From: Obrimoposthia wandeli
Lineage: Eukaryota
Reading direction: 5' to 3'
DNA length: 64,000 nt
Assembly (NCBI GenBank): GCA_977020255.1
Contig: CDROCS010004540.1
Span: 1 to 64,000 of the forward strand
This document shows positions 18,951-31,351 of the stretch, piece by piece. Each line of letters begins with the position of its first letter. Within the stretch, counting starts at the first letter, position 1. The notes under the pieces are model-generated. The model saw only the letters and a program-made list of their open reading frames with translations. It had not been told where the DNA came from and searched no databases. A program made the position numbers and the translations under genes.

Positions 18951-19496
18951 TTACTCATAAGACAAATATTGCAAAACTTGTGCACGATTCGACTCTTTTG
19001 CTATCCATTCACGAATTTTATCCGCTTCTTTAACCGTTTCTTCGCCTAACATATCGACAAAACGCTGACGGCGAGTTTCTTCTGTCACCTGCTTACGCAC
19101 CTGTCGCTGCCACTGCTCGGTAAAGACCGCAGGCATTTTCGCCCCCAGATTAAGCGATTTTAATAATGACCATTCGCCTTTATCAAGCCAAGCTTCATCA
19201 CAATTAGCACATAAATCTAAGCGGTTATCATGCCCACTGGAGATTCGATACTTGGTCATGATGCGACTGCACTTTGGGCAACCCATTGCTGCATGAGTAT
19301 TTTCAGCATCTTCAACGTGTATTTCTTCTGCTTGCGCACTCTCAGTTGCAGAAGCAATACCAAAACGCTCAGCCCAGTCTCTGTAATACAACAGAGAGAC
19401 AAATATACCTTGGCACTCGTTACATCCCATCGCTGATAAACCCTGCTCCATCTTAGTCGGGTGTAAATCAGGACTTTTACATTTTGGGCATTTCAT
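18951..19496 (-). CDS. Double zinc-ribbon (zf-TFIIB-type) protein
   Basis: CPKC..CNEC and CPKC..CANC..WLDKGE. AAGGA SD upstream. Confidence 0.8.
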   Translation of the reverse strand: MKCPKCKSPDLHPTKMEQGLSAMGCNECQGIFVSLLYYRDWAERFGIASATESAQAEEIHVEDAENTHAAMGCPKCSRIMTKYRISSGHDNRLDLCANCDEAWLDKGEWSLLKSLNLGAKMPAVFTEQWQRQVRKQVTEETRRQRFVDMLGEETVKEADKIREWIAKESNRAQVLQYLSYE

Positions 19497-19558: not shown

Positions 19559-22500
19559 CTAGTTTTTATCGACTTTTTTAACGCTGTATTCTGTTTCCAA
19601 AGCCCTTAACTGAGTTGAAATTTCTTTCATCTTGTCATGAGTTTTTAAATCGATATCAATTTTTCGATCCATCGAACGCACAATGGGAAAGATACTATTT
19701 TCCATGGTATCGGCTAAAGCTTTCAGTATTTTATCCAACCCCGGCACTGGTTGGTTGATGACTTCAACTTTAGGTGCAATTTGCTTTGAGGACTGTTGAG
19801 CAATGAGTTTGATCCCATTAGAGACTACTGATGCAAATTGGCTCAACGATTGATTCAATCCTTCTAGCTGCTTGATACTCGCAGTTTCATAAGGCTGTTC
19901 TTCGCTTCTGCGCAATGCCTCTGCATTTCTAAAAAGTATCTCTTCGTTTCTGTAGTGTGCTTCTGTTTCTATACGAGATTGCTTATCCCGCTCACGCATT
20001 TGATGTGTTTGCTCGGCATTTTCGCCAAGAGATTTCACGCCATTCACAAGATCAACAAGTTGCGCAATGACCTTCCCACCCACATCCGCATCATCACCAC
20101 CCATGGCTTTGTTACGAATAAAGTCGGCTTTTATCTTCGCCCAGCGAGTAGCTTCTTCATCGGTCATTTCACCGCGCAGCTCTGCCAGCTTCAATAAATT
20201 TTCTTCAGAGCCATTAGTTAATAACTGTGATTCACCAACATAATGATCGGCAATCATCTGCATCAACTCGCCATGATTCATAACCGAAGATACTTTTTCG
20301 GCCATTTTATTCATATTACGATAACTACCTTGCAACCTAAATGAAGGCTCAATACGGTATTCATCCGACTGTGCAGCCGAAGCGATATATTGCTGATTAA
20401 TTTTCAATACCACATCTTGAATGACAAACAGCTTTTTCAATACAGCCGTTATTTCATTAATCTCAGCACCACTGTATTGATGACTTAAATCAGTGGTCGC
20501 AATACTTTCGCCTTTCGTCATGCGCACAATTTTATAGAGATCGTTTAAATCTCGTGTTGCTAAAGGTGCTAGAACAGAATTCGAAGTCATACAGTTTTCG
20601 ACATAACTCAATGCAAATTGCTCATCCATACCTCCTAGAATGTCACCTAGGTTGTAAATATCCGCACGGTTTGCCAACATATCAGGCACTTGGAAAGCTT
20701 CGCCTGTTTCGGTATAGGGGTTACCCGCCATAACGACGCAGAACTTTTTACCGCGCATGTCATAGGTTTTAGTTTTCCCTTTCCAAATACCTTCGATGCG
20801 ACGAGTACCATCACATAAAGAAATAAACTTCTGTAAAAACTCAGGATGCGTATGCTGAATATCATCGAGATACAGCATCACGTTTGTTCCCATTTCTAAA
20901 CCGAGATTTAATTTCTCTAATTCTTGACGGGCAGTCGCATTCGGAGCTTGCTCTGGATCCAGCGATAAAACATCATGCCCTAATGAAGGACAATTAATTT
21001 TCATGAAGATCAAACCTAAGCGGCTTGCGACATATTCCATCAGAGTCGTTTTACCGTAACCTGGTGGAGAAATCATCATCAACAAACCCATTAAATCAGA
21101 ACGTTTATTCTCACCTAATGTCCCCATTTGCTTGGCTAAGTTATCACCAATTAATGGCAAGTAAGATTCATTAATTAAACGGTTACGTACAAAAGAGCTT
21201 AGTGGCTTAGGCTTAAACGATTCAAGACCTAACAAGTCTCTTTCTTGCTCAATAATTCCCTGACGCATTTTATGATAATGATGAAAACCCGTAACAACAC
21301 GCTGTTGATGGTCATCTAAGCGCTGTAAGAATTCATCAATCGCCAATGTCATCGTTTGCTTATCGATTCGAGGGTGATCACCCAATAAACCAGTAATCGT
21401 TAATTCAGTATCGACTTCCGTGGGCCGACGTTCTATTCGACCTTCGGCATTGATCATCGCCACGGCTTCCGGAATATAGCGCGATAAGTGTGTTAGCCCC
21501 TTACCTTCTACTAATGCGGTCAACCAAGATTGAGTCAAATTCCAGCGCTGAGCAACTTTTCCTTTGAGCGTATCCAGCGTGCCATTCAACTTACGCCACG
21601 AAGAAGAGTCTAAAGAATTCTTCAATTCGTTAACAAGTTGCTGTGCATATTTACTGGCAATAAATTCAATACGATCACGGCCTAATTCATGCACAAAATA
21701 ATCAGAACTTCTGCTTAATTCATGCTGCGTTGAAGGCAAACCATAATGATCATTAAAATCCGTTAATGCTTGCAGTATTTCAGCACGTAATAATTGAATC
21801 GCTTTGTTATTATTAAAAATTTCTTTCATTTGAAAAGCTGATTGCGCGCGCTCGTGCCAGCTTTGTGTTTGTATTTTCAATGCTAACAAATTGTCTGCCG
21901 CATCACTTTCTAGATGTTGAATATTGGCCCAGAAAATTTGCGCAAGTCCACGACATAATGGATCAAATCTTAATTGATCAGCACTGTCCAGCGCCGGTAA
22001 TAATTTCTGTAATAGCAATACTGCATCGTGGTCATGAATACCTTTTTCATAACCTTCTTTATAACGTGGATTAGCAAAATCACGCACTAAGCTGCTGAGC
22101 TTAGCTTCGTCTAATAATGCATGTTTAAGCAATTCGTTATTCAGACCATCAGTATTGTTGTCTGCCGCTTGTATGATTAAGGCAACTAGGTATTCACTGC
22201 GATAAACCTCTGGGCTTTCAGATTCAATCGCCATTTCCCAGAAAGGTCTTAACTCTATTAAATCAGTACGGGTTAACTCTTCAAAATAATCGGTACCGGT
22301 TAAGTGAATGTTTAGCTCACCATTTCTCGGCACTATGGTTAAATCGAGTTCTTGGGTATTAACACTGAATTTATGACGCGGGCCCAGCTTAATAACATTG
22401 CCGCCATCTTCATAAATATCTGTTTTATCTCTTAGCGAGCGTAACGCTTGTTCTTTTATTGACTTAAAACGAGATTCGACATCATCCGCTTTAACTGAAT

Positions 22501-25018
22501 TTTCTAATTCACGTAGGCGCTCGACCATGTCTCGGGTTTTAAGTACCAATGAATCGGAAGCAAAATAGGTATTAAGTTGCTCGGCATCGGTAAACTTTAA
22601 CGAACGGCGTTCGATACTGCTTAATATTCTATTCGCCGCATCCGTCACTGATTGCGCTTTGCGTAATCGTTCATCAAGCAATAACTGCTTATGACTTTCG
22701 AAAGATTGATAAACTTCATCTCTCTTCGCCATAATATCGCTAAGAAACTCTTCGAAGTCGCTGAACTGGCTTTCCAGTTCTTCTAGCTGTACTAGTAAGC
22801 GAGATAGCTGTTCATCGCAACGCTCTGGAGTCGTCGACATCCCCAAAGCATTTGTAATACTTTGTGAGAATAATTTAAATTGGGCGCTAAACTGAGCGAC
22901 TGCCTCTTCTGAACCTACCGATTTCTGCTTATGCTTAGCGGCCGCCTTGCTTTGATTCAGCTTTGAGTAAACTTCAGAAATAGCATCAATAATACGAGTA
23001 CGTACCGTCGCATCATTTACTTTAAGTGAGGACATCAACTCTGATAATAAATCTAGGCCTGAAGCAGTTTCTTCAATTTGTTCGATAATAGGTGCCAATA
23101 TGGCAATGGTTTCAGCATCCTTTACGTCCTTATCAAACGTTTTAATCTTGTCGAAATACGGTGATAGCGCCGCATCTTGAGATAAGAATTCAACCGTGCT
23201 TTCGCTGAGTTTCTCTTGCGCCTGAATTAATTGCTGATCCAACTCTTCTAAACGATCAGTATTGATATAACGGTATTCTTTGATCGTTGCGAGATGGCCA
23301 CGCTGCTGGCGTAATGAATTTAACGCTGCAACAAACTCTTCTGCTACTTGCCAATTTTCAGGACGAATAGAGATAATGAGTTTTTGCTGTTCTTCTTCTG
23401 CATTTGCCATCGCAAGTTGAGACTGCTGGCGAATACTCTGAACTTTTTCAAATTCATCAATAACGAGTTCAGAGGTTGTTGATATTTGTTTTATTAAAGC
23501 CGCTATCGAATTATTTTTATCGACGAGAGCTTCCTGACTGCTTGAATACTCTTCAATCCAATAATGTGAATCAAAAAAACGATTGGCTGTTTTACTGAGT
23601 TCTTCATAAATTCTTGCTGATACCGTTTGATCAGAAATCATGCGATGCAAACTGTATAAGTCAGAGACACCACGAACTAATGAGGCATTCCCTATCTTGC
23701 CAAAGAAGCTCTGGCTAACATCTGCGCGACTGGCATAGTCCACACTGACATACGCCGTTTGCCAAATTTGCATTGGGTGTATACGTGTTGGTTCATTCTC
23801 AGCCGAGAAAATCACCAGTATGCCATCTTCTGCCAGCGCATAACCGTGACCGTAAATAGGGTTTTGCATCGACTTGCTGATTAGATTGTAAGAAAACAAA
23901 CCAAACAAACCTTGCTCAGGCTCATAAAAAACAAATAATACATCTTCCCCATTCGGGGATTTAATCATGCGCTTAAATTTAAGCGACTGGCCATTTTCAA
24001 GTGAGGCTAAAGCATCCCCTGCAAATGTTTTCATTTCGCCAGTTTGCAGGTAATAGCCGCCAGGAAATATAATGCCATGATCTTCTGGCAACTGGACACA
24101 AGACTGACCAATATCGTCAATTTTAACCACTTCATCGGTTAAGGAATTGAAAACAAAATAACGCCACTGCTCTTCACGATAAGGCAGTATTTTTAACAGT
24201 ATAAGCGCCCCGACACTGGCATAGAAAAACTGGCCATCATCTAAGGATTGAGTCCCGTCTTCAACAGGCTCACTATAAATGCCTTTACCATTTTCGGTAT
24301 TGTTTTCGATCTTAATGGTTAGATCACCATTAATCGTTTCTACAAATACTTTATCTAGAATATTAATATGAGGATGACGACCATGTTCAGTATTTTCACG
24401 ATCTGTGGCTGTCCATTCAAAATCGTATGCACTCGGCAACTGAATATCACGTTCGCCGCGATTATCAATATACGTTATATCTTTACCATCAGCAGAAATA
24501 GACCAACGGAAAACACGAATATCTTCTAGACGCTCACCAATTTGAAAGCCTGCTAATAACTTGCCATCTTTGACTGTTAGCTGCACAAGTCGAGTTTGCT
24601 TGTAATAACGATACAGTTCTAAGAAATCACTTTGAAAAGATGCTGACGTTAAAAAACTGTCTTTATGACTAACGGCTTCAAGGCTGTAACTTTCACCCTC
24701 AACATTTAATTTGAATAACGAGAATACATCTTCAATATGGGTTTCTTTTTTTAAACCAATAAATACGTTGTAACCAAAAAGAAGATAATCACCAATTTGA
24801 ACCATATCGCGTGCGACACAGTTATTTTCTGTGCGTACCCGTACTCGAGAAATAACACTCAGATCTGAACTTCCGAATTCAGATAAGCGCGCATCATTTA
24901 AAGCCCGAGCCTGCTGGTTTAATAATCGCCCTTGCTCGACTAAGCGCTTACGAATAACTTCATAGGCACCACCTTCTGCAACGGCATTTTCTACTTGATT
25001 GGGGTTTTGCTCAGCCAT
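19559..25018 (-). CDS. Giant AAA+ ATPase (DUF3686 / 'DNA repair ATPase' family), 1819 aa
   Basis: Walker A SPPGYGKTT, Walker B LYLDD, sensor-1 VMAGNPY, Arg-finger LANRAD. Beta-rich N-terminus and long coiled-coil middle. Gene context matches the Pseudomonas PA3728-like locus (from memory). Confidence 0.8.
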   Translation of the reverse strand: MAEQNPNQVENAVAEGGAYEVIRKRLVEQGRLLNQQARALNDARLSEFGSSDLSVISRVRVRTENNCVARDMVQIGDYLLFGYNVFIGLKKETHIEDVFSLFKLNVEGESYSLEAVSHKDSFLTSASFQSDFLELYRYYKQTRLVQLTVKDGKLLAGFQIGERLEDIRVFRWSISADGKDITYIDNRGERDIQLPSAYDFEWTATDRENTEHGRHPHINILDKVFVETINGDLTIKIENNTENGKGIYSEPVEDGTQSLDDGQFFYASVGALILLKILPYREEQWRYFVFNSLTDEVVKIDDIGQSCVQLPEDHGIIFPGGYYLQTGEMKTFAGDALASLENGQSLKFKRMIKSPNGEDVLFVFYEPEQGLFGLFSYNLISKSMQNPIYGHGYALAEDGILVIFSAENEPTRIHPMQIWQTAYVSVDYASRADVSQSFFGKIGNASLVRGVSDLYSLHRMISDQTVSARIYEELSKTANRFFDSHYWIEEYSSSQEALVDKNNSIAALIKQISTTSELVIDEFEKVQSIRQQSQLAMANAEEEQQKLIISIRPENWQVAEEFVAALNSLRQQRGHLATIKEYRYINTDRLEELDQQLIQAQEKLSESTVEFLSQDAALSPYFDKIKTFDKDVKDAETIAILAPIIEQIEETASGLDLLSELMSSLKVNDATVRTRIIDAISEVYSKLNQSKAAAKHKQKSVGSEEAVAQFSAQFKLFSQSITNALGMSTTPERCDEQLSRLLVQLEELESQFSDFEEFLSDIMAKRDEVYQSFESHKQLLLDERLRKAQSVTDAANRILSSIERRSLKFTDAEQLNTYFASDSLVLKTRDMVERLRELENSVKADDVESRFKSIKEQALRSLRDKTDIYEDGGNVIKLGPRHKFSVNTQELDLTIVPRNGELNIHLTGTDYFEELTRTDLIELRPFWEMAIESESPEVYRSEYLVALIIQAADNNTDGLNNELLKHALLDEAKLSSLVRDFANPRYKEGYEKGIHDHDAVLLLQKLLPALDSADQLRFDPLCRGLAQIFWANIQHLESDAADNLLALKIQTQSWHERAQSAFQMKEIFNNNKAIQLLRAEILQALTDFNDHYGLPSTQHELSRSSDYFVHELGRDRIEFIASKYAQQLVNELKNSLDSSSWRKLNGTLDTLKGKVAQRWNLTQSWLTALVEGKGLTHLSRYIPEAVAMINAEGRIERRPTEVDTELTITGLLGDHPRIDKQTMTLAIDEFLQRLDDHQQRVVTGFHHYHKMRQGIIEQERDLLGLESFKPKPLSSFVRNRLINESYLPLIGDNLAKQMGTLGENKRSDLMGLLMMISPPGYGKTTLMEYVASRLGLIFMKINCPSLGHDVLSLDPEQAPNATARQELEKLNLGLEMGTNVMLYLDDIQHTHPEFLQKFISLCDGTRRIEGIWKGKTKTYDMRGKKFCVVMAGNPYTETGEAFQVPDMLANRADIYNLGDILGGMDEQFALSYVENCMTSNSVLAPLATRDLNDLYKIVRMTKGESIATTDLSHQYSGAEINEITAVLKKLFVIQDVVLKINQQYIASAAQSDEYRIEPSFRLQGSYRNMNKMAEKVSSVMNHGELMQMIADHYVGESQLLTNGSEENLLKLAELRGEMTDEEATRWAKIKADFIRNKAMGGDDADVGGKVIAQLVDLVNGVKSLGENAEQTHQMRERDKQSRIETEAHYRNEEILFRNAEALRRSEEQPYETASIKQLEGLNQSLSQFASVVSNGIKLIAQQSSKQIAPKVEVINQPVPGLDKILKALADTMENSIFPIVRSMDRKIDIDLKTHDKMKEISTQLRALETEYSVKKVDKN

Positions 25019-25147: not shown

Positions 25148-27109
25148 TTAGCTATTAGTCGTGATTTCGCTATCACTACTTGCTTTCTTCTTGCTTTGAT
25201 TTTCCATCACGGTTGCTAATAACGCGCCGACTGTGCTGCTCTTCTGAGCAACACCATCAATCGCTTTACCTAATGATAGAGACTTAGAGAAGGTATCGAA
25301 GAAGTGGCCTTCACCACCCACAATATCGATTTTCGCTTTTTGCAGTGCTGTTGAAAGAACAGCCGCATTATCACGAGCAATCTCTTTACCTGCATCAAGG
25401 GTCGCTATTGCTTCTTTGAATGCTGTTTCTAAGCTCATACGGAATTCTTCGTGATCACGTGCTTGCTCACTCATGCCGCCCATAGCATCGAATTTCTCAA
25501 CCAGACCTTCGGCTTCTGCTTTAAAGTGCTCGCGAGTAACATCTGCTTCAGCAAGACCAACGTCCTTCGTTGCTTTCGCTTGTGCGCTGCCTTTTGCACT
25601 GATAACTTCTGCACCGGCCAAACCTGTTTCACGTAATGCTGTCGCTTCAGATGTGCCTTTAGCTGCAATAACGGATGCTTCTGCTAAACCTTCTTTTTCT
25701 AATGCTTCTGCTTTAGCTTCTTGTACTTTCGCTTCTGCTAAGCCAGTCGCTGCTTGCTCTGCTTGCACACCTTCGGCAAGTTTCTTCTTAGATTCAGCTT
25801 CTTTGGCAGATGCTTCTAAATTGGCTTGTGCCAACGTTGTAATTTCTACCGCTTTGAATTTAGCCGCTTGTTCTTGCGCTTCAGCCGCTTTCACTTGCTT
25901 AACTTTCAATTCATCAGCGTCACCTTCTGCAGCCAATACTTGTATTTGCTTCAAGCGATCGGCTTCAGAGACTTCACGTACTTCTTTAATACGCTCTTCT
26001 TCAATCGCCACGGTCTTATCAACAACAACACGTTCACGAATCACATTAGCAATTTCTTTTTTCTCGATTTCAATCGCTTTTTCAGCTTCGATAGTTTGCA
26101 AGTCAACTTCGCGATTACGCGCAACGATTTCTAGATCTCTAGCGCGGGTTACTTTTTCAACTTCAATAACGACAGCACGCTGACGATTCTGTTCGGCTAC
26201 TTCGACTTCACGCTTTTGATTTTCAGTTTGTACCGCTAAGTCTTGCTCAACTTGTATACGAGTCGACTCTGACTTGCCACGCTCTTCTTCTTGAACCTTA
26301 AGTGTTTCTGCTTCTTCACGGGCACGAATAGTTAAAACTTCACGCTCTTGCTTCGCTTCTGCATCCGCTTCTTGACGCTCTAGCTCCAACATGGCTTCAC
26401 GAGTTTCAACATTCTTCTTTTTAATCGCTAAATTTTCGTTTTGCTCAAGCTCATTAGTGATTACATTTTGATTCGCAGTTAATTCAGTAATTTTCTTAAT
26501 ACCTTCGGCATCAAGAATGTTATTAGGGTCTAGCGCATGCTTTGGCGTTTGCTCAAGATAATCAATCGCCACATCTTCTAATACATAACCATTTAAATCG
26601 TCACCAATAACTTCGACAATTTTTTCACGGAATTGTAAGCGGTTTTCAAACAGTTGAACGAATTCAATTTGCTTACCCACTGTTTTCAAAGCTTCTGAGA
26701 ACTTAGCGGCAAATAATTCATAAACCGCGTCTTTATCAGAGGCACGATCAGCACCAATCGATTTGGCAACTCGTAATACATCTTCTGAAGTTTCATTGAC
26801 TCGTAGATAAAAAGCAACGGTGATATCCGCACGCATATTATCTAAGCAGATCAAGCCGTCTTTTCCGCGACGATCTACTTCTAAAGTAATTAACGAGACC
26901 TTCATTAATTCTTTCTTATAGATAACTGGGATTACTAAGGCACCAGTAAAATGCACCTTAGGAGTCGAACTCATGTCATTGACGATTAAGGCAGTACCCT
27001 GCGCCACCTTTATATAAAAGGATTGAAAGACAAATAAAACCCCAATAATAATAAGAACAAAAATACCGATACCCGTTAGTATCGGCATTAATACTGATAA
27101 ATCAGCCAT
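25148..27109 (-). CDS. Flotillin-like SPFH/band-7 protein (YqiK-like)
   Basis: N-terminal TM, SPFH core (RADITVAFYLRV, FSEALKTVG), long E/A/K coiled coil and G.AEA repeats. Confidence 0.88.
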   Translation of the reverse strand: MADLSVLMPILTGIGIFVLIIIGVLFVFQSFYIKVAQGTALIVNDMSSTPKVHFTGALVIPVIYKKELMKVSLITLEVDRRGKDGLICLDNMRADITVAFYLRVNETSEDVLRVAKSIGADRASDKDAVYELFAAKFSEALKTVGKQIEFVQLFENRLQFREKIVEVIGDDLNGYVLEDVAIDYLEQTPKHALDPNNILDAEGIKKITELTANQNVITNELEQNENLAIKKKNVETREAMLELERQEADAEAKQEREVLTIRAREEAETLKVQEEERGKSESTRIQVEQDLAVQTENQKREVEVAEQNRQRAVVIEVEKVTRARDLEIVARNREVDLQTIEAEKAIEIEKKEIANVIRERVVVDKTVAIEEERIKEVREVSEADRLKQIQVLAAEGDADELKVKQVKAAEAQEQAAKFKAVEITTLAQANLEASAKEAESKKKLAEGVQAEQAATGLAEAKVQEAKAEALEKEGLAEASVIAAKGTSEATALRETGLAGAEVISAKGSAQAKATKDVGLAEADVTREHFKAEAEGLVEKFDAMGGMSEQARDHEEFRMSLETAFKEAIATLDAGKEIARDNAAVLSTALQKAKIDIVGGEGHFFDTFSKSLSLGKAIDGVAQKSSTVGALLATVMENQSKKKASSDSEITTNS

Positions 27110-27159: not shown

Positions 27160-27828
27160 TTATTTCAGAAATTCAGTTTCAGAGATAACTCGATAAGCAT
27201 GCTGGTCATTAAGGTATTCCAGCAATACAACACGATCACCTTTTTTATAGGTTTCGTTATTGATTGTTCGGGCCTTCAAAATCAACCCTGCTCCACCATC
27301 CGCTAAGAGTACTTCTCCAAAGCCAGAATCAAGTCGTAGTGAGCGCACGATTGCCGTTTGCCCAAGCAGATTTTTGACTGTATTTTTATTCATATTAGCA
27401 AACAAAGGTTTCAACGGCTTAATGACCTGTGCCGTGATCAATACCGCGACGTATAAGGAGCCGACAAGTATGGGCAAACCGACAATGTATTCTAAGAAGC
27501 CATCAGGTATAAACGGAAAGATAAAATACACGGCAAAGTAACAGATCAACCAGCCAAATAGGGCTAAGAGGGATATAACAATCGTTAACGGCACGCCATT
27601 TAAACCAAGTTTTAACAACAGTCCCGCCAACTGGTGCACACCACCGTCTGCATCAGTATCGCCTTCAGGCATATCAACATCTAATACATCTAAATCAATA
27701 ATACCCAATACTGCGATCAACCAATAAACAGCGGTCAATGCTAATAAGAGAGTGAAAAACAGCGTCGGAAATGAAGCTATATTCTGATAGAAAGGATCCA
27801 TTTTATCGCTTAAAAATATCGCAAACAT
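27160..27828 (-). CDS. YqiJ/NfeD-like membrane protein with C-terminal OB fold
   Basis: TM, acidic DLDVLDVD loop, further TMs, then GQTAIV..GEV..GDRVVLLEY. This is the typical flotillin partner. Confidence 0.75.
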   Translation of the reverse strand: MFAIFLSDKMDPFYQNIASFPTLFFTLLLALTAVYWLIAVLGIIDLDVLDVDMPEGDTDADGGVHQLAGLLLKLGLNGVPLTIVISLLALFGWLICYFAVYFIFPFIPDGFLEYIVGLPILVGSLYVAVLITAQVIKPLKPLFANMNKNTVKNLLGQTAIVRSLRLDSGFGEVLLADGGAGLILKARTINNETYKKGDRVVLLEYLNDQHAYRVISETEFLK

Positions 27829-27931: not shown

Positions 27932-28618
27932 CTACTGTTTATTTTTTAATCGTTCCAATACATCTTTGGCTTGCTGACCTTGATTAGCAATTCCGGCTTT
28001 TTGCAATTTATCGTGCAAAGACTGTTCAGAAGTATTAGCGTGAAGCTCTTCTGTAGCCTGCAACTTCGCAGCATTCAGAGTTTGCTTCTGCTTAATTCGC
28101 TCTAACGAATCCATGGCTGTTTGCAATTTAGTATTAGACCCGGCATAACGTTGCGATACAGACTCTTGCGCGCGCTGCACACTCTCGGTCGCTTTCACGG
28201 TATCAATCTGTTGCTTCAAGCGCTTAATATTATTGTCCGCAGAGGCAATGGCCGCTTTTAAACTATTTGCACTGGCAGAAAAACCGTCAACAACCTCTGA
28301 CTCAGAGGATTGTAGATTTTCTAACTCAGCAATTTTTTCAGCAATTTCTAGCGCCAATACATCATCATTTTTTTCTAATGCTTTAATCGCATAACCTTCG
28401 TACTCTGTGATACTGCCTTTTAGCGTATTGACCTTCTGCTCGGCCACTTTTTGCTGTGCAATAATAGAGACAAGACCTTCTTTGGACAGCTTTAATTCAC
28501 TGGAGGCATCACGCACCTCTTGATCCAGAATTCGGAGCGCTTGAGTATCAACGACAGCCTCTCCTGCTTCATTCATTCCACCCCGTAATGCCGTTAACAT
28601 TTTTGACCATAAGTTCAT
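27932..28618 (-). CDS. PspA/IM30 (bacterial ESCRT-III) family protein, YjfJ-like
   Basis: Amphipathic start MNLWSKMLTALRG, LDQEVRDA, AIKALE, coiled coil, C-terminal VLERLK. GAGGAG SD. Confidence 0.9.
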   Translation of the reverse strand: MNLWSKMLTALRGGMNEAGEAVVDTQALRILDQEVRDASSELKLSKEGLVSIIAQQKVAEQKVNTLKGSITEYEGYAIKALEKNDDVLALEIAEKIAELENLQSSESEVVDGFSASANSLKAAIASADNNIKRLKQQIDTVKATESVQRAQESVSQRYAGSNTKLQTAMDSLERIKQKQTLNAAKLQATEELHANTSEQSLHDKLQKAGIANQGQQAKDVLERLKNKQ

Positions 28619-28644: not shown

Positions 28645-29298
28645 TTAAACTAAGCCAATTTCAGGCATCGGTTGAAAAGTTAAAAACTCAGCGTAGGCTT
28701 GAGTCGCTTGTATTACGTTATTCGCCAGCATGTCGATTTCTAACAAGACATTCGACAATAATGAAGAGGCGCTTAAAGCCCCAAACATATGATAAACCGA
28801 GTCACCATTCGTCATCGTATCTAAACTGATGGTTGAAAGTGGAAAGTACTTATGGGTACGTAGCACAGCATCATTAAATCCTGCCACATCCGATACCGCA
28901 TCGACTGGCCACAATACCGATTCAACAATTATTTGCTCGCCGACAACCGTTAGAAATACAGGTAAGTCGCCAAAAGCTTTCATCTCGATGAAAAGTGAAG
29001 CATCGATACCATCAATTAATTCTATCGTTGCCTGATTCGTCGAAAATAGTGGTTCTTGTTCTAGTGCTGCCTTTAAGCTCTGGCTTGTCCATAGCTCTGA
29101 CATTGCATGTGAGTTTGTCATGACAAAATCTCCGTCTCTTATCGTTTCAACCAAGTTGGGTTCACGTAGTGTTTTTTCCGCCTGAGTCAGCAACCGTGCG
29201 TTCTCTGGACGAATCCAAACTTCCTTCTTCACCAGCCCCTGCTCTCTCAAGCGGCGGCGGAATTCTCTTTGATAGTGTGCTGATGTTTTTTGTGTCAT
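28645..29298 (-). CDS. YjfI/DUF2170 family protein with a basic N-terminal extension
   Basis: C-terminal core (FGDLPVFLTV..QIIVESVLW..KYFPLSTI..MFGALS) is YjfI-like. The first ~59 aa are Arg-rich (YQREFRRRLREQGLVKKEVWIRPE). Confidence 0.75.
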   Translation of the reverse strand: MTQKTSAHYQREFRRRLREQGLVKKEVWIRPENARLLTQAEKTLREPNLVETIRDGDFVMTNSHAMSELWTSQSLKAALEQEPLFSTNQATIELIDGIDASLFIEMKAFGDLPVFLTVVGEQIIVESVLWPVDAVSDVAGFNDAVLRTHKYFPLSTISLDTMTNGDSVYHMFGALSASSLLSNVLLEIDMLANNVIQATQAYAEFLTFQPMPEIGLV

Positions 29299-29303
29299 GA
29301 CTA

Positions 29304-29332
29304 AACATACCTATTACATGTAATGCCGTCAA
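29304..29332 (-). promoter_or_regulatory. Sigma70-like promoter TTGACG-N17-TATGTT
   Basis: -35 at 29332-29327 and -10 at 29309-29304. The ATG begins 6 nt after the -10. Confidence 0.6.
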
Positions 29333-29368
29333 GCATTACATGTAATATAATTCCGTATTACATGTAAC
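29313..29368. promoter_or_regulatory. Three palindromic operator-like sites ATTACATGTAA(T/C) at 22-bp period
   Basis: Copies start at 29313, 29335 and 29357. An extra half-site ATGTAAC lies at 29375-29381. Confidence 0.75.
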
Positions 29369-29533
29369 AAATAAATGTAACTTAACCCTTGCTGCTCCAC
29401 GCCTCAACATCCTAGAGTGAAGTGCTAAAAGGAACAACTTGGAATGTTTAAAAAAGAGAACTGGGGAACGTATAAATAAGAGGGCAACAGCGTAGCGAAA
29501 AAACACCAAGGAAAAAGACGAGAAGAACTCGCC

Positions 29534-31351
29534 TTATGAGTTACTGATCCAGAGTGTTTGATAAGGCAGCAGCGGCACTAGCATATCTTGGCGGGTCATT
29601 TCCTTACCAGAAATAAGATCATGCCAGTCATCCGTGCTGACCAAGTTAATATCCGATAACATAAACTGCTGCGCTAAATCACTGATATTACTAATACAGA
29701 AAATACTCTGCTTTCTATCGTGAGACTGACGCCAATAAGCGAAAATAGAATCCCCTAGATGCAGCGTAAATTGCGGCGCATTCGGGTGAAACGCTTTTTG
29801 CTGCTGTCGAATGGCTAATAATCGCTTTAACTCTGTGAATACTTTTTTGTGATGGCCTTTCTCTTCAGCCAGCTCATCATCAACCTGTTCGCTATTAAAC
29901 GGTTCACTGTCGGCTAAAAGCACTTCCAATTCATCGTATTGCCACTGGTGTCGATTTATCGAGCGATTGTGACCCGTATTTTCCATCCGCTGATAATCAT
30001 TGCGCGTCGCTAACAAGCTATGAACATAGATACCAGGAATACCTTCTAGACCCAGCATAATGGCATGGGCGCAGACAAAGCGGTCGATGCCCAGTTCGTC
30101 CTTGCCTTTTAACGTGCCTTGCAGCGCATCAAATAACGAGATATTCACTTCATAAGGCTTTTGAACCGCTTCGCCTTTCTCGTTTTCTAACGCGCGCCAA
30201 GAAATTCGGCCGCCAAAGTTTTGCAAGGTATCGACCAGAACTTGGGTTTCATCGTCTGCCAATATCCCCTCGACCGGTCTTAGCCCCATCCCATCATGGG
30301 AGGCAATAAAATTAAAATACGTGGTGCCTAATTGAGCTGGGGGCATGCTCATTAACCAAAGCTTTAAATGATGGCTATTGCCTGTGATCAAGGTATTGAT
30401 TAATAACGGGGGTAAAGCAAAGTTATACACGCAGTGTGCTTCGTTGGCATTGCCAAAATACGATAGATTTTCGCGATTGGGAATATTGGTTTCGGTGATA
30501 ATGACAGCATCGCGCTGTGCATGCTCAATTAATAACCTTAATAAGCGTACTACGTTATGTGTTTCTTCAAGATTAATACTGGGCGAGTCGATTTTCTTCC
30601 ATAAAAAAGCAATCGCATCGAGGCGAAAAATGCGTACGCCCATATCCAAGTATTGGCGGATAATTTTCACAAATTGTAATAAAACTTCAGGATTTCTAAA
30701 ATCTAAATCAACCTGATCATGGCTAAAAGTACACCAGACATATTGCAGCCCTTTATTCGTTTGAGTCTCTCTTAATAGCGGACTGGTTCTTGGCCTGACC
30801 ACCTGGGTTAAGTCAGCCTCTAATGACTCGGTATAAAAGTAGTCATGACCTGGCCCTTCGCCTTTGATAAAGTTTTGAAACCATAAACTGCGACTTGAAC
30901 AATGGTTAATAACTAGATCAGCCATCAAACGATAGTCTTGGCTTATGCTTTCAATATCTCCCCAATCTCCCAGTGATTCATTCACACTGGAAAAATCCAT
31001 GACTGAAAAACCATCGTCAGAACTGAAAGGGAAAAAAGGCAGAATATGCACGCTGTTAATTAAGCCCTCGCAATACTCATCTAAAAAATGCTTTAAGGTA
31101 ATGAGTGGTTTTTCTTTATCAGATAAAAAACTATCGCCATAAGTGATCATCACGGTAGTCGATTGATCCCACAAATCACTCGGGCGCACCTGGTCGTGAG
31201 AGGCGGCTTGATGGCTCGCACTCTCTAATCTCATTTCTTTTAAAAGTGTTTCGGTAAGCACTTCAAACGGTACGTTAATCTCCGTTTCATGATAGATCAT
31301 TTCTAATAAGTGCTGGCTGCGCTGTAATAATGCGGAATCAAATAAACTCAT
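29534..31351 (-). CDS. GH13_18 sugar phosphorylase, probably glucosylglycerate phosphorylase
   Basis: [18 protein letters not shown] nucleophile, ITETN, ASHDG, and a KPYEVN loop. In operon with GpgS/GpgP. Confidence 0.8.

Follow-up and report, generated by a model that had tools for sequence, protein, structure and literature searches.

A nearly invariant N-terminal domain of BacA-type proteins very probably recognises palindromes laid over its own, predicted leaderless, promoter

Introduction

How is a PspA/flotillin membrane-stress operon controlled when its first gene encodes neither a PspF-type activator nor a two-component system? The question was raised by a locus in a 64,000-nt stretch of DNA (hereafter the window; positions 1 to 64,000 of contig CDROCS010004540.1, assembly GCA_977020255.1). 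The contig is a bacterial guest in a 1.35-Gb eukaryotic assembly deposited for Obrimoposthia wandeli, and a pattern search of that assembly was of no use. An earlier note, made from the sequence alone, had proposed that three evenly spaced palindromes form the operator of a leaderless promoter, and that the product of the first gene, a YjfI-like protein with an N-terminal extension, represses its own operon. Here we examine the locus and its relatives in other bacterial genomes, and find this arrangement to recur in more than 80 of them, including Pseudomonas aeruginosa.

Results

Three palindromes overlap the only sigma-70-like promoter upstream of the first gene

The palindrome TTACATGTAA occurs exactly at 29314-29323, 29336-29345 and 29358-29367, and nowhere else in the 64-kb window even with one mismatch allowed. 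As 12-mers the boxes read ATTACATGTAAT at 29313-29324 (O1) and 29335-29346 (O2), while the third (O3, 29357-29368) matches at 11 of 12 positions and retains the exact 10-bp core, GTTACATGTAAT on the minus strand. The spacing is exactly 22 bp, and the centres lie at about -20.5, -42.5 and -64.5 from the ATG and predicted start site. A degenerate fourth box (8 of 10) at 29371-29380 is out of phase, 13 bp from O3, and is not conserved in relatives. The window-wide count alone is not significant (3 seen, 3.65 expected with up to 1 mismatch); it is the clustering and the conservation across genomes that are.

Read on the minus strand, the promoter consists of TTGACG (29332-29327), 17 nt, TATGTT (29309-29304), TAGTC, and then the ATG (29298-29296), which begins 6 nt after the -10 and leaves no room for a Shine-Dalgarno sequence. 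It is the only promoter-like match on that strand in the intergenic region. O1 fills the spacer between the hexamers and O2 ends 3 nt upstream of the -35. A terminator-like hairpin (29515-29535, minus strand) directly after the stop of the upstream GH13 gene argues against read-through as the source of operon transcripts. A second terminator-like call, at 29347-29312, is only two operator boxes pairing with each other, and we rejected it as a terminator because the boxes are positioned relative to the promoter in all genomes.

The first gene is a BacA orthologue at the head of a conserved operon

The gene downstream of this promoter (28645-29298, minus strand; 217 aa) is an orthologue of P. 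aeruginosa BacA, matching NCBIfam NF050185 over aa 1-207 (profile positions 1-203 of 206) with 300.7 bits against a cut-off of 300, a narrow margin. It is followed on the same strand by a PspA/IM30-family gene equivalent to bacB (27932-28618; PF04012, E 1.6e-43), a 222-aa membrane protein that is YqiJ-like by position only (27160-27828), a 653-aa coiled-coil membrane protein that is flotillin-like by position and equivalent to PA3729/PaFlo3 (25148-27109), a giant ATPase with DUF3686 and AAA+ domains equivalent to bacE (19559-25018; PF12458, E 9e-199, plus AAA), and a zinc-ribbon protein that is the probable sixth gene (18951-19496; PF13453, E 5.8e-11). Pfam, NCBIfam and PDB sequence searches did not confirm the names YqiJ and flotillin, which rest on synteny and, for the flotillin-like protein, also on Ravi et al. 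The PspA-like gene is conserved downstream in 74 of 74 loci and the YqiJ-like gene in 73 of 74; overall three downstream genes are present in 73-74 of 74. In contrast, no upstream neighbour is conserved (at most 6 of 74 loci), leaving BacA as the only conserved candidate binder in the locus.

The protein has three parts. The DUF2170 (CesT-like) domain covers aa 70-206 (28681-29091; PF09938, 161.5 bits against a gathering score of 27, E 1.3e-47), matches PDB 8q8o with E 2.7e-38 and is modelled by AF2 with a pLDDT of about 85. A variable linker (aa 46-69; 29092-29163) shows no conservation at the protein level and is predicted to be disordered, with pLDDT below 50 for aa 49-66. The N-terminal 45 residues (29164-29298) form a separate, basic and nearly invariant domain, in which 22 residues are invariant among 18 diverse homologues and 59% of nucleotide differences fall at third codon positions.

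The N-terminal domain is predicted to form a ribbon-paired dimer

AF2 models the N-terminal domain as a basic helix (6-19), a strand (21-30) and a second helix (31-45), with a pLDDT of about 95 for aa 11-40. A homodimer model scored 0.35, whereas the best of 3 controls scored 0.00; that mark was reached by 21 of 30 proteins solved as pairs of one chain and by 0 of 23 solved as single chains. The three runs share at least 94% of contacts and the pLDDT of the partner is 70. The predicted interface comprises strand 21-31, paired antiparallel (contacts 27:25, 23:28, 26:26), plus helix 2.

The window's own N-terminus gives no hit to PF11455 (MazE-like/DUF3018) at E 10 or below, and three homologues score 13-14 bits against a cut-off of 22. 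A profile of the domain finds it fused to DUF2170 or standing alone, and 17 of 40 such relatives hit PF11455 (best E 1.5e-5), suggesting that the resemblance to DUF3018 recorded in the earlier note is real but indirect. No ribbon-helix-helix Pfam family matches, Foldseek searches of PDB and AFDB clusters gave nothing, and a profile search of PDB sequences gave only a weak match to the KorA C-terminus (E 0.075) that we do not use. The contexts of three stand-alone homologues were arrays of tiny unannotated ORFs without a recognisable toxin gene, and were uninformative.

The operator and the domain go together across genomes

In 81 long-form loci we counted 188 boxes (up to 1 mismatch) in the 110 bp upstream, or 21 per kb, against 8 in 504 kb of flanking DNA, or 0.016 per kb, an enrichment of about 1300-fold. 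All loci have at least 1 box, 78 have at least 2 and a third box is present in 28. A box at -25 to -29 from the ATG is present in most loci and one at -47 to -53 in nearly all; one box usually sits in the -35/-10 spacer and one abuts the -35. A TTGACA-like hexamer lies at the same place in most loci, and the gap between the -10 and the ATG is 5-7 nt in 70 of 81. In the Oleispira/Bacterioplanoides alignment O1 and the TTGAC of the -35 are invariant. Box spacing is mostly 21-24 bp but varies from 20 to 25 bp across genomes, so the strict same-face cooperativity envisaged in the earlier note is not a conserved feature. In three complete genomes the exact 10-mer occurs 3, 3 and 4 times, of which 2, 3 and 3 lie at this promoter.

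Thirty-five short-form DUF2170 loci have neither the domain nor the box. We also looked for a separately encoded homologue of the domain near short-form yjfI genes and in five whole short-form genomes, and none was found, although this search had no positive control. Where the N-terminal domain diverges, the fusions carry other palindromes: TCACCGGTGA twice at 22 bp, TGACATGTCA, CAGGTAA-N4-TTACCTG, AGCTTA-N5-TAAGCT, CGTAAC-N8-GTTACG, and TTACAAGTAA/TTACTTGTAA.

A published start site in P. aeruginosa coincides with the long-form ATG

P. aeruginosa has the same layout: ATTACATGTGAG, TTGAAA, 17 nt containing TTACATGTGA, TAGTGT, 6 nt, ATG. In the dRNA-seq data for strain PA14 (Wurtzel 2012, Table S3), TU 841 has its start site at 1374599 and its annotated ORF start at 1374776. 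This 177-nt 5' UTR equals exactly 59 codons, the distance from M1 to M60, which places the start site on the A of the long-form ATG and suggests that this mRNA is leaderless. The coincidence rests on arithmetic with the published coordinates and on a contig of another P. aeruginosa strain, and for the window the leaderless start is transferred from this orthologue.

A conserved internal start may yield a short isoform

Within the linker, the in-frame ATG of M60 (29119-29121) is preceded at 8 nt by the Shine-Dalgarno sequence GGAG (29130-29133). An ATG with an SD-like motif is present here in 73 of 81 long-form genes and in 5 divergent fusions, and the codon at M-4 is GGA in 68 of 73 loci, against 14% of the other Gly codons in the same genes. 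The equivalent ATG is taken to be the annotated PA14_16140 start, with which the 177-nt offset fits, and it matches the first residues of crystal 8q8o.

Discussion

Our analyses support the view that BacA is a one-component autorepressor, a reading to which we assign a probability of roughly 0.85. In this model the N-terminal domain, possibly a distant relative of MazE-like/DUF3018 antitoxin N-termini, pairs through its strands into a dimeric DNA-binding module that recognises the palindrome formed by TTACA and TGTAA. Boxes in the promoter spacer, just upstream of the -35 and further upstream would, when occupied, exclude RNA polymerase and shut off the whole operon. The boxes, their co-occurrence with the domain and the promoter geometry are clear from sequence comparison, whereas direct DNA contact and cooperativity between the boxes are inferred. 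The flexible linker would tie this module to the dimeric DUF2170 domain as the input domain, which probably binds the PspA-like product, so that the availability of that product sets repression; the nature and sign of the signal are likewise inferred, although an AF2 BacA-BacB interaction has been published (PMC13092808). Autorepression fits the published P. aeruginosa bacA mutant, which accumulates the Bac proteins (PMC10948618), but as this is a transposon insertion, its effect on downstream proteins could partly reflect the transposon's own promoter.

The testable parts of the earlier note thus held up, with qualifications. Its ribbon-helix-helix analogy is only partly right, since the order of elements is helix-strand-helix even though the predicted dimer pairs the strands into an antiparallel ribbon. 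Its suggestion that such control was undescribed is partly wrong, since negative control of the operon by BacA was published in 2024. That work used the short form and proposed protein-protein control and a sigma-54 site; the DNA-binding domain, the operator and the leaderless design were not found in the literature we could search.

It is possible that the boxes are instead the operator of an unlinked transcription factor, and that the N-terminal domain binds RNA or another protein. The domain has no solved relative, and short-form yjfI operons also carry palindromes (GACATAATATGTC) although they lack the domain, so an external regulator of such operons exists somewhere. We consider this unlikely, however, because the box tracks the domain in 81 of 81 long forms against 0 of 35 short forms, changes where the domain diverges, and is almost confined to this promoter in the complete genomes, while no neighbouring regulator gene is conserved and the bacA mutant over-accumulates the Bac proteins.

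Two further alternatives appear very unlikely. Classical psp operons are sigma-54 dependent, and Wallart et al. (2024, Fig. 4B) proposed -24/-12 elements for P. aeruginosa bacA from sequence inspection, in which case the palindromes would be incidental or enhancer sites for an enhancer-binding protein. Yet the window has no GG-N10-GC element between -200 and +185, the best P. aeruginosa match is 5 of 10, and the score distribution over 82 loci (the 81 long-form loci plus a P. aeruginosa contig) equals that of a control coding region. Moreover, the mapped PA14 start site lies 6 nt after a sigma-70-type -10, and the -35/-10 hexamers are conserved. The N-terminal extension might also be an annotation artefact, with the upstream 177 nt a 5' UTR, given the good Shine-Dalgarno sequence at M60 and the fact that the older PA14 annotation and the crystal construct start there. 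Against this, the reading frame is open in all loci, NF050185 models the long form, and codons 6-45 show a clear coding signature: differences by codon position are 31795, 19269 and 72098, and 55081 differing codon pairs are synonymous against 31137 non-synonymous, while the upstream control is flat.

It is tempting to speculate that one leaderless mRNA yields two BacA isoforms, which we regard as about as likely as not. The long form would start at the 5'-terminal AUG and carry the DNA-binding domain, whereas the short form, starting at M60, would consist only of the dimerising CesT-like domain. The short form might pair with the long form or compete for the PspA-like partner, acting as a built-in anti-repressor or buffer, and repression would then depend on the ratio of leaderless to SD-led translation as well as on PspA availability. 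Such a design would be an unusual way to tune a repressor.

Our model offers a testable mechanism for a protein so far called only a 'possible regulator' of a P. aeruginosa biofilm and virulence cluster, and suggests that the annotated gene start and the crystallised construct lack the DNA-binding domain. It defines a control logic for PspA/ESCRT-III-flotillin operons that needs neither PspF nor a two-component system and is widespread in marine and soil Gammaproteobacteria. Leaderless mRNAs, of which this would be a deeply conserved case, are rare in Gammaproteobacteria. It also supplies a functional context, an operator with a co-varying domain, for the uncharacterised DUF3018-like fold.

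The closest known system is P. aeruginosa BacA itself (PA3732/PA14_16140), first gene of the bac (biofilm-associated cluster) operon, which shares the operon order, two boxes around a sigma-70-like promoter and the leaderless geometry, although the published annotation begins at M60 and crystal 8q8o covers only DUF2170. MazE-like/DUF3018 antitoxins (PF11455) offer a short basic N-terminal helix-strand-helix with the G-[LF]-V...W-[IV]-x-P signature and, if their members bind DNA as we assume here, an N-terminal DNA binder joined to a C-terminal partner-binding part that represses its own operon at palindromes over the promoter, as in type II antitoxin autoregulation in general. In BacA, however, there is no toxin partner, the next gene being PspA-like, and the C-terminal part is a folded CesT-like domain, not an unfolded toxin-wrapping tail. 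Ribbon-helix-helix repressors (Arc, Mnt, MetJ, CopG, omega) likewise are small dimers whose strands pair into an antiparallel ribbon, as predicted here, and use arrays of short palindromic or repeated boxes about two helical turns apart over a promoter, but in BacA a helix precedes the strand and the topology is not beta-alpha-alpha. In the E. coli PspA-PspF circuit, too, a PspA-family effector feeds back on the regulator of its own operon by direct binding, as is likely here; the BacA-BacB interaction is predicted in PMC13092808 and reported there as unpublished in PMC10948618. PspF, though, is a sigma-54 activator that PspA inhibits, whereas here a sigma-70 promoter would be blocked by a repressor encoded as the first operon gene. 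Finally, CesT/ExsC-type chaperones that double as regulators (ExsC-ExsD-ExsE, CesT-CsrA) share the CesT fold, and the DUF2170 domain forms dimers (8q8o, PMC10948618) and probably signals by partner switching; those chaperones have no DNA-binding domain of their own, while here the chaperone fold is fused to a predicted one.

Sequence context of the promoter region

On the minus strand, the intergenic region upstream of the first gene reads ...GTTACATGTAAT-N10-ATTACATGTAAT-GC-TTGACG-GC-ATTACATGTAAT-AGG-TATGTT-TAGTC-ATG. The 10-mer TTACATGTAA occurs exactly three times in 64 kb, at 29314, 29336 and 29358, with no further matches when one mismatch is allowed. A consensus scan found a single promoter-like site on this strand, TTGACG-17-TATGTT, from 29332 to 29304, and a terminator-like hairpin sits directly behind the stop codon of the upstream GH13 gene, at 29535-29515. 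The ATG at 29298 opens a 217-aa frame in which Pfam recognizes DUF2170 at aa 70-206, while NCBIfam NF050185, 'biofilm formation regulator BacA', matches aa 1-207 at 300.7 bits against a cut-off of 300.

Five more genes lie downstream in the same orientation, encoding a PspA/IM30 protein, a membrane protein, a 653-aa coiled-coil membrane protein, a DUF3686/AAA+ giant and a zinc-ribbon protein. The presumed flotillin (653 aa, 25148-27109, minus strand) and the presumed YqiJ/NfeD-like membrane protein (222 aa, 27160-27828, minus strand) match no Pfam, NCBIfam or PDB sequence at usual thresholds, and their names rest on synteny with the P. aeruginosa bac operon. The contig is Oleispira-like, its proteins being 92-97% identical to Oleispira MAG proteins, but it lies inside a 1.35-Gb, 6912-contig eukaryotic assembly and is presumably a contaminant or an associated bacterium.

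A conserved N-terminal domain predicted to dimerize

In 18 diverse long-form homologues, aa 1-45 are more conserved than the DUF2170 domain. Twenty-two residues are invariant, among them H8, Y9, Q10, R11, R14, R16, R18, G21, K24, K25, E26, W28 and P31, while the following 25 or so residues are variable. Across 80 loci, differences in codons 6-45 fall 31795 : 19269 : 72098 on codon positions 1, 2 and 3, whereas an upstream control is flat; the region is therefore translated. AF2 models a helix (6-19), an extended stretch (20-30) and a second helix (31-45) with high confidence, and the full-length model shows a disordered linker (pLDDT below 50 for aa 49-66) followed by a well-folded DUF2170 domain. 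A homodimer test of aa 1-54 gave a score of 0.35, with 0.00 for the best of 3 controls, a mark that was reached by 21 of 30 proteins solved as pairs of one chain and by 0 of 23 solved as single chains. The runs share at least 94% of contacts, the pLDDT of the partner is 70, and the predicted interface is the antiparallel pairing of strands 21-31 plus helix 2. This supports dimerization but does not show it.

A profile of the domain, searched against 1.84 billion representatives, recovered 132 proteins, in which the domain is either fused to DUF2170 or stands alone as proteins of 44-90 aa. Of 40 such sequences, 17 hit PF11455 (MazE-like, formerly DUF3018), with a best E of 1.5e-5, although the sequence from the window does not and its homologues score 13-14 bits. 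No solved structure or fold-cluster match was found. Three stand-alone homologues, 46-54 aa long, lie in dense same-strand arrays of tiny ORFs without Pfam matches, which look like phage or mobile-element accessory regions.

The boxes recur at the promoters of long-form genes

A search for related loci returned 80 long-form loci from Oleispira, Hahella, Cellvibrionaceae, Methylococcales, Arenicella, Reinekea and others. Counting the window as well, all 81 loci have at least one box (up to 1 mismatch) in the 110 bp upstream, and 78 have two to four. Box density is 21 per kb upstream, against 0.016 per kb in 504 kb of flanks. One box usually sits in the promoter spacer, at about -27 from the ATG, and one just upstream of the -35, at about -50, with successive boxes mostly 21-24 bp apart. 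Among close relatives, the invariant columns are the boxes, TTGAC, the -10 and the ATG, and the alignment collapses further upstream. In three complete genomes the exact 10-mer occurs 3, 3 and 4 times, and of these 2, 3 and 3 are at this promoter; the protein would thus be a local regulator without an obvious regulon. No upstream neighbor gene is conserved (at most 6 of 74 loci), but three downstream genes are present in 73-74 of 74.

Loci that differ in the N-terminal domain provide a contrast. Seven short-form DUF2170 loci from a class-wide sample lack both the domain and the box, as do 28 of 30 loci from an order-wide sample. The two long forms in the order-wide sample carry TTACATGTGA/TTACATGTAA and TTACAAGTAA/TTACTTGTAA. 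Five fusions with divergent N-terminal domains each have a different palindrome at the promoter, one of them having TCACCGGTGA twice, 22 bp apart, next to a TTGACG hexamer. Operator sequence therefore changes with the domain, which is the pattern expected if the domain reads the operator. The short-form genes nevertheless carry their own upstream palindrome, GACATAATATGTC-like and usually in two copies about 36 bp apart, in 5 of 7 loci and in 19 of 28 loci. No homologue of the BacA N-terminal domain was found in five of these genomes. In E. coli, a 1-bp deletion 80 bp upstream of yjfI derepresses yjfIJKL (PMC12492005).

Evidence for a leaderless start

The gap between the -10 and the ATG is 5-7 nt in 70 of 81 loci. 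A P. aeruginosa contig (L095, 3001-3180) shows the arrangement ATTACATGTGAG-CTG-TTGAAA-(17 nt containing TTACATGTGA)-TAGTGT-GAGTCC-ATG, with an in-frame ATG 177 nt downstream, behind a GGAGG. For PA14_16140-16150, Table S3 of Wurtzel et al. 2012 lists a TSS at 1374599, an ORF start at 1374776 and a 5' UTR of 177 nt, which is exactly 59 codons. By this arithmetic, which combines published PA14 coordinates with a contig of another P. aeruginosa strain rather than a reading of the PA14 sequence itself, the mapped start site is the A of the long-form ATG. The older PA14 annotation is then the short form. Consistent with this, the PDB chain 8q8o starts at about residue 61 of the long form, and the 478-bp PCR product spanning the gene in Wallart et al. 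also fits a short annotation. In the absence of RNA data from the organism of the window, a leaderless start at 29298 is suggested by these comparisons. The leaderless design is not universal in the wider family, however, as one divergent long-form locus from the order-wide sample (L098) keeps the boxes around a TTGACT-17-TAAATT promoter but has a leader of about 50 nt, with a GC-rich hairpin, before the start codon.

A conserved internal ribosome-binding site

We also identified a probable second translation start within the gene. In 73 of 81 long-form genes, the variable linker contains an in-frame ATG preceded by GGAG at 8 nt (29119-29133, minus strand, in the window). The codon four positions before the Met is GGA in 68 of 73 genes, whereas GGA makes up only 103 of 745 (14%) of the other glycine codons in the same genes. 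The next codon starts with G in 71 of 73 genes, although it encodes E, V, G or D, and only 12 of 322 other in-frame ATGs have an SD-like motif. Five deeply divergent fusions show the same feature. This is selection at the nucleotide level for a ribosome-binding site, and a short isoform without the proposed DNA-binding domain is therefore probably made from the same mRNA. It might serve as an anti-repressor, as a partner buffer or as the actual PspA chaperone.

Repression, signal and relation to published BacA

Boxes inside and next to the core promoter imply repression, and in P. aeruginosa a bacA transposon mutant accumulates the other Bac proteins (PMC10948618). The authors of that work proposed protein-protein control and, from sequence inspection, a sigma-54 site. 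We find no GG-N10-GC element in the window, and across 82 loci (the 81 long-form loci plus L095) there is no enrichment over a control region.

The nature of the signal is inferred. The DUF2170 domain has the CesT-chaperone fold and is dimeric (PMC10948618), a BacA-BacB (PspA-like) complex was predicted with an AF2 probability of 0.981 (PMC13092808), and an unpublished strong interaction is also mentioned. It is possible that the PspA-like protein acts as a co-repressor, as toxins do for antitoxins, or alternatively as an inducer.

The earlier note, which described the three palindromes over a promoter predicted to give a leaderless transcript and read the gene as an autorepressor, was correct in its observation, and its interpretation is supported on every point that could be tested, with three corrections. 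The predicted fold is helix-strand-helix and not a classical ribbon-helix-helix, and the 22-bp phasing, from which cooperative binding on one DNA face had been inferred, is not strictly conserved. The note also knew of no description of the control logic. While the proposed DNA-binding domain, operator, leaderless start and internal start were not described in the papers we could search, the negative role of the protein was already published as BacA.
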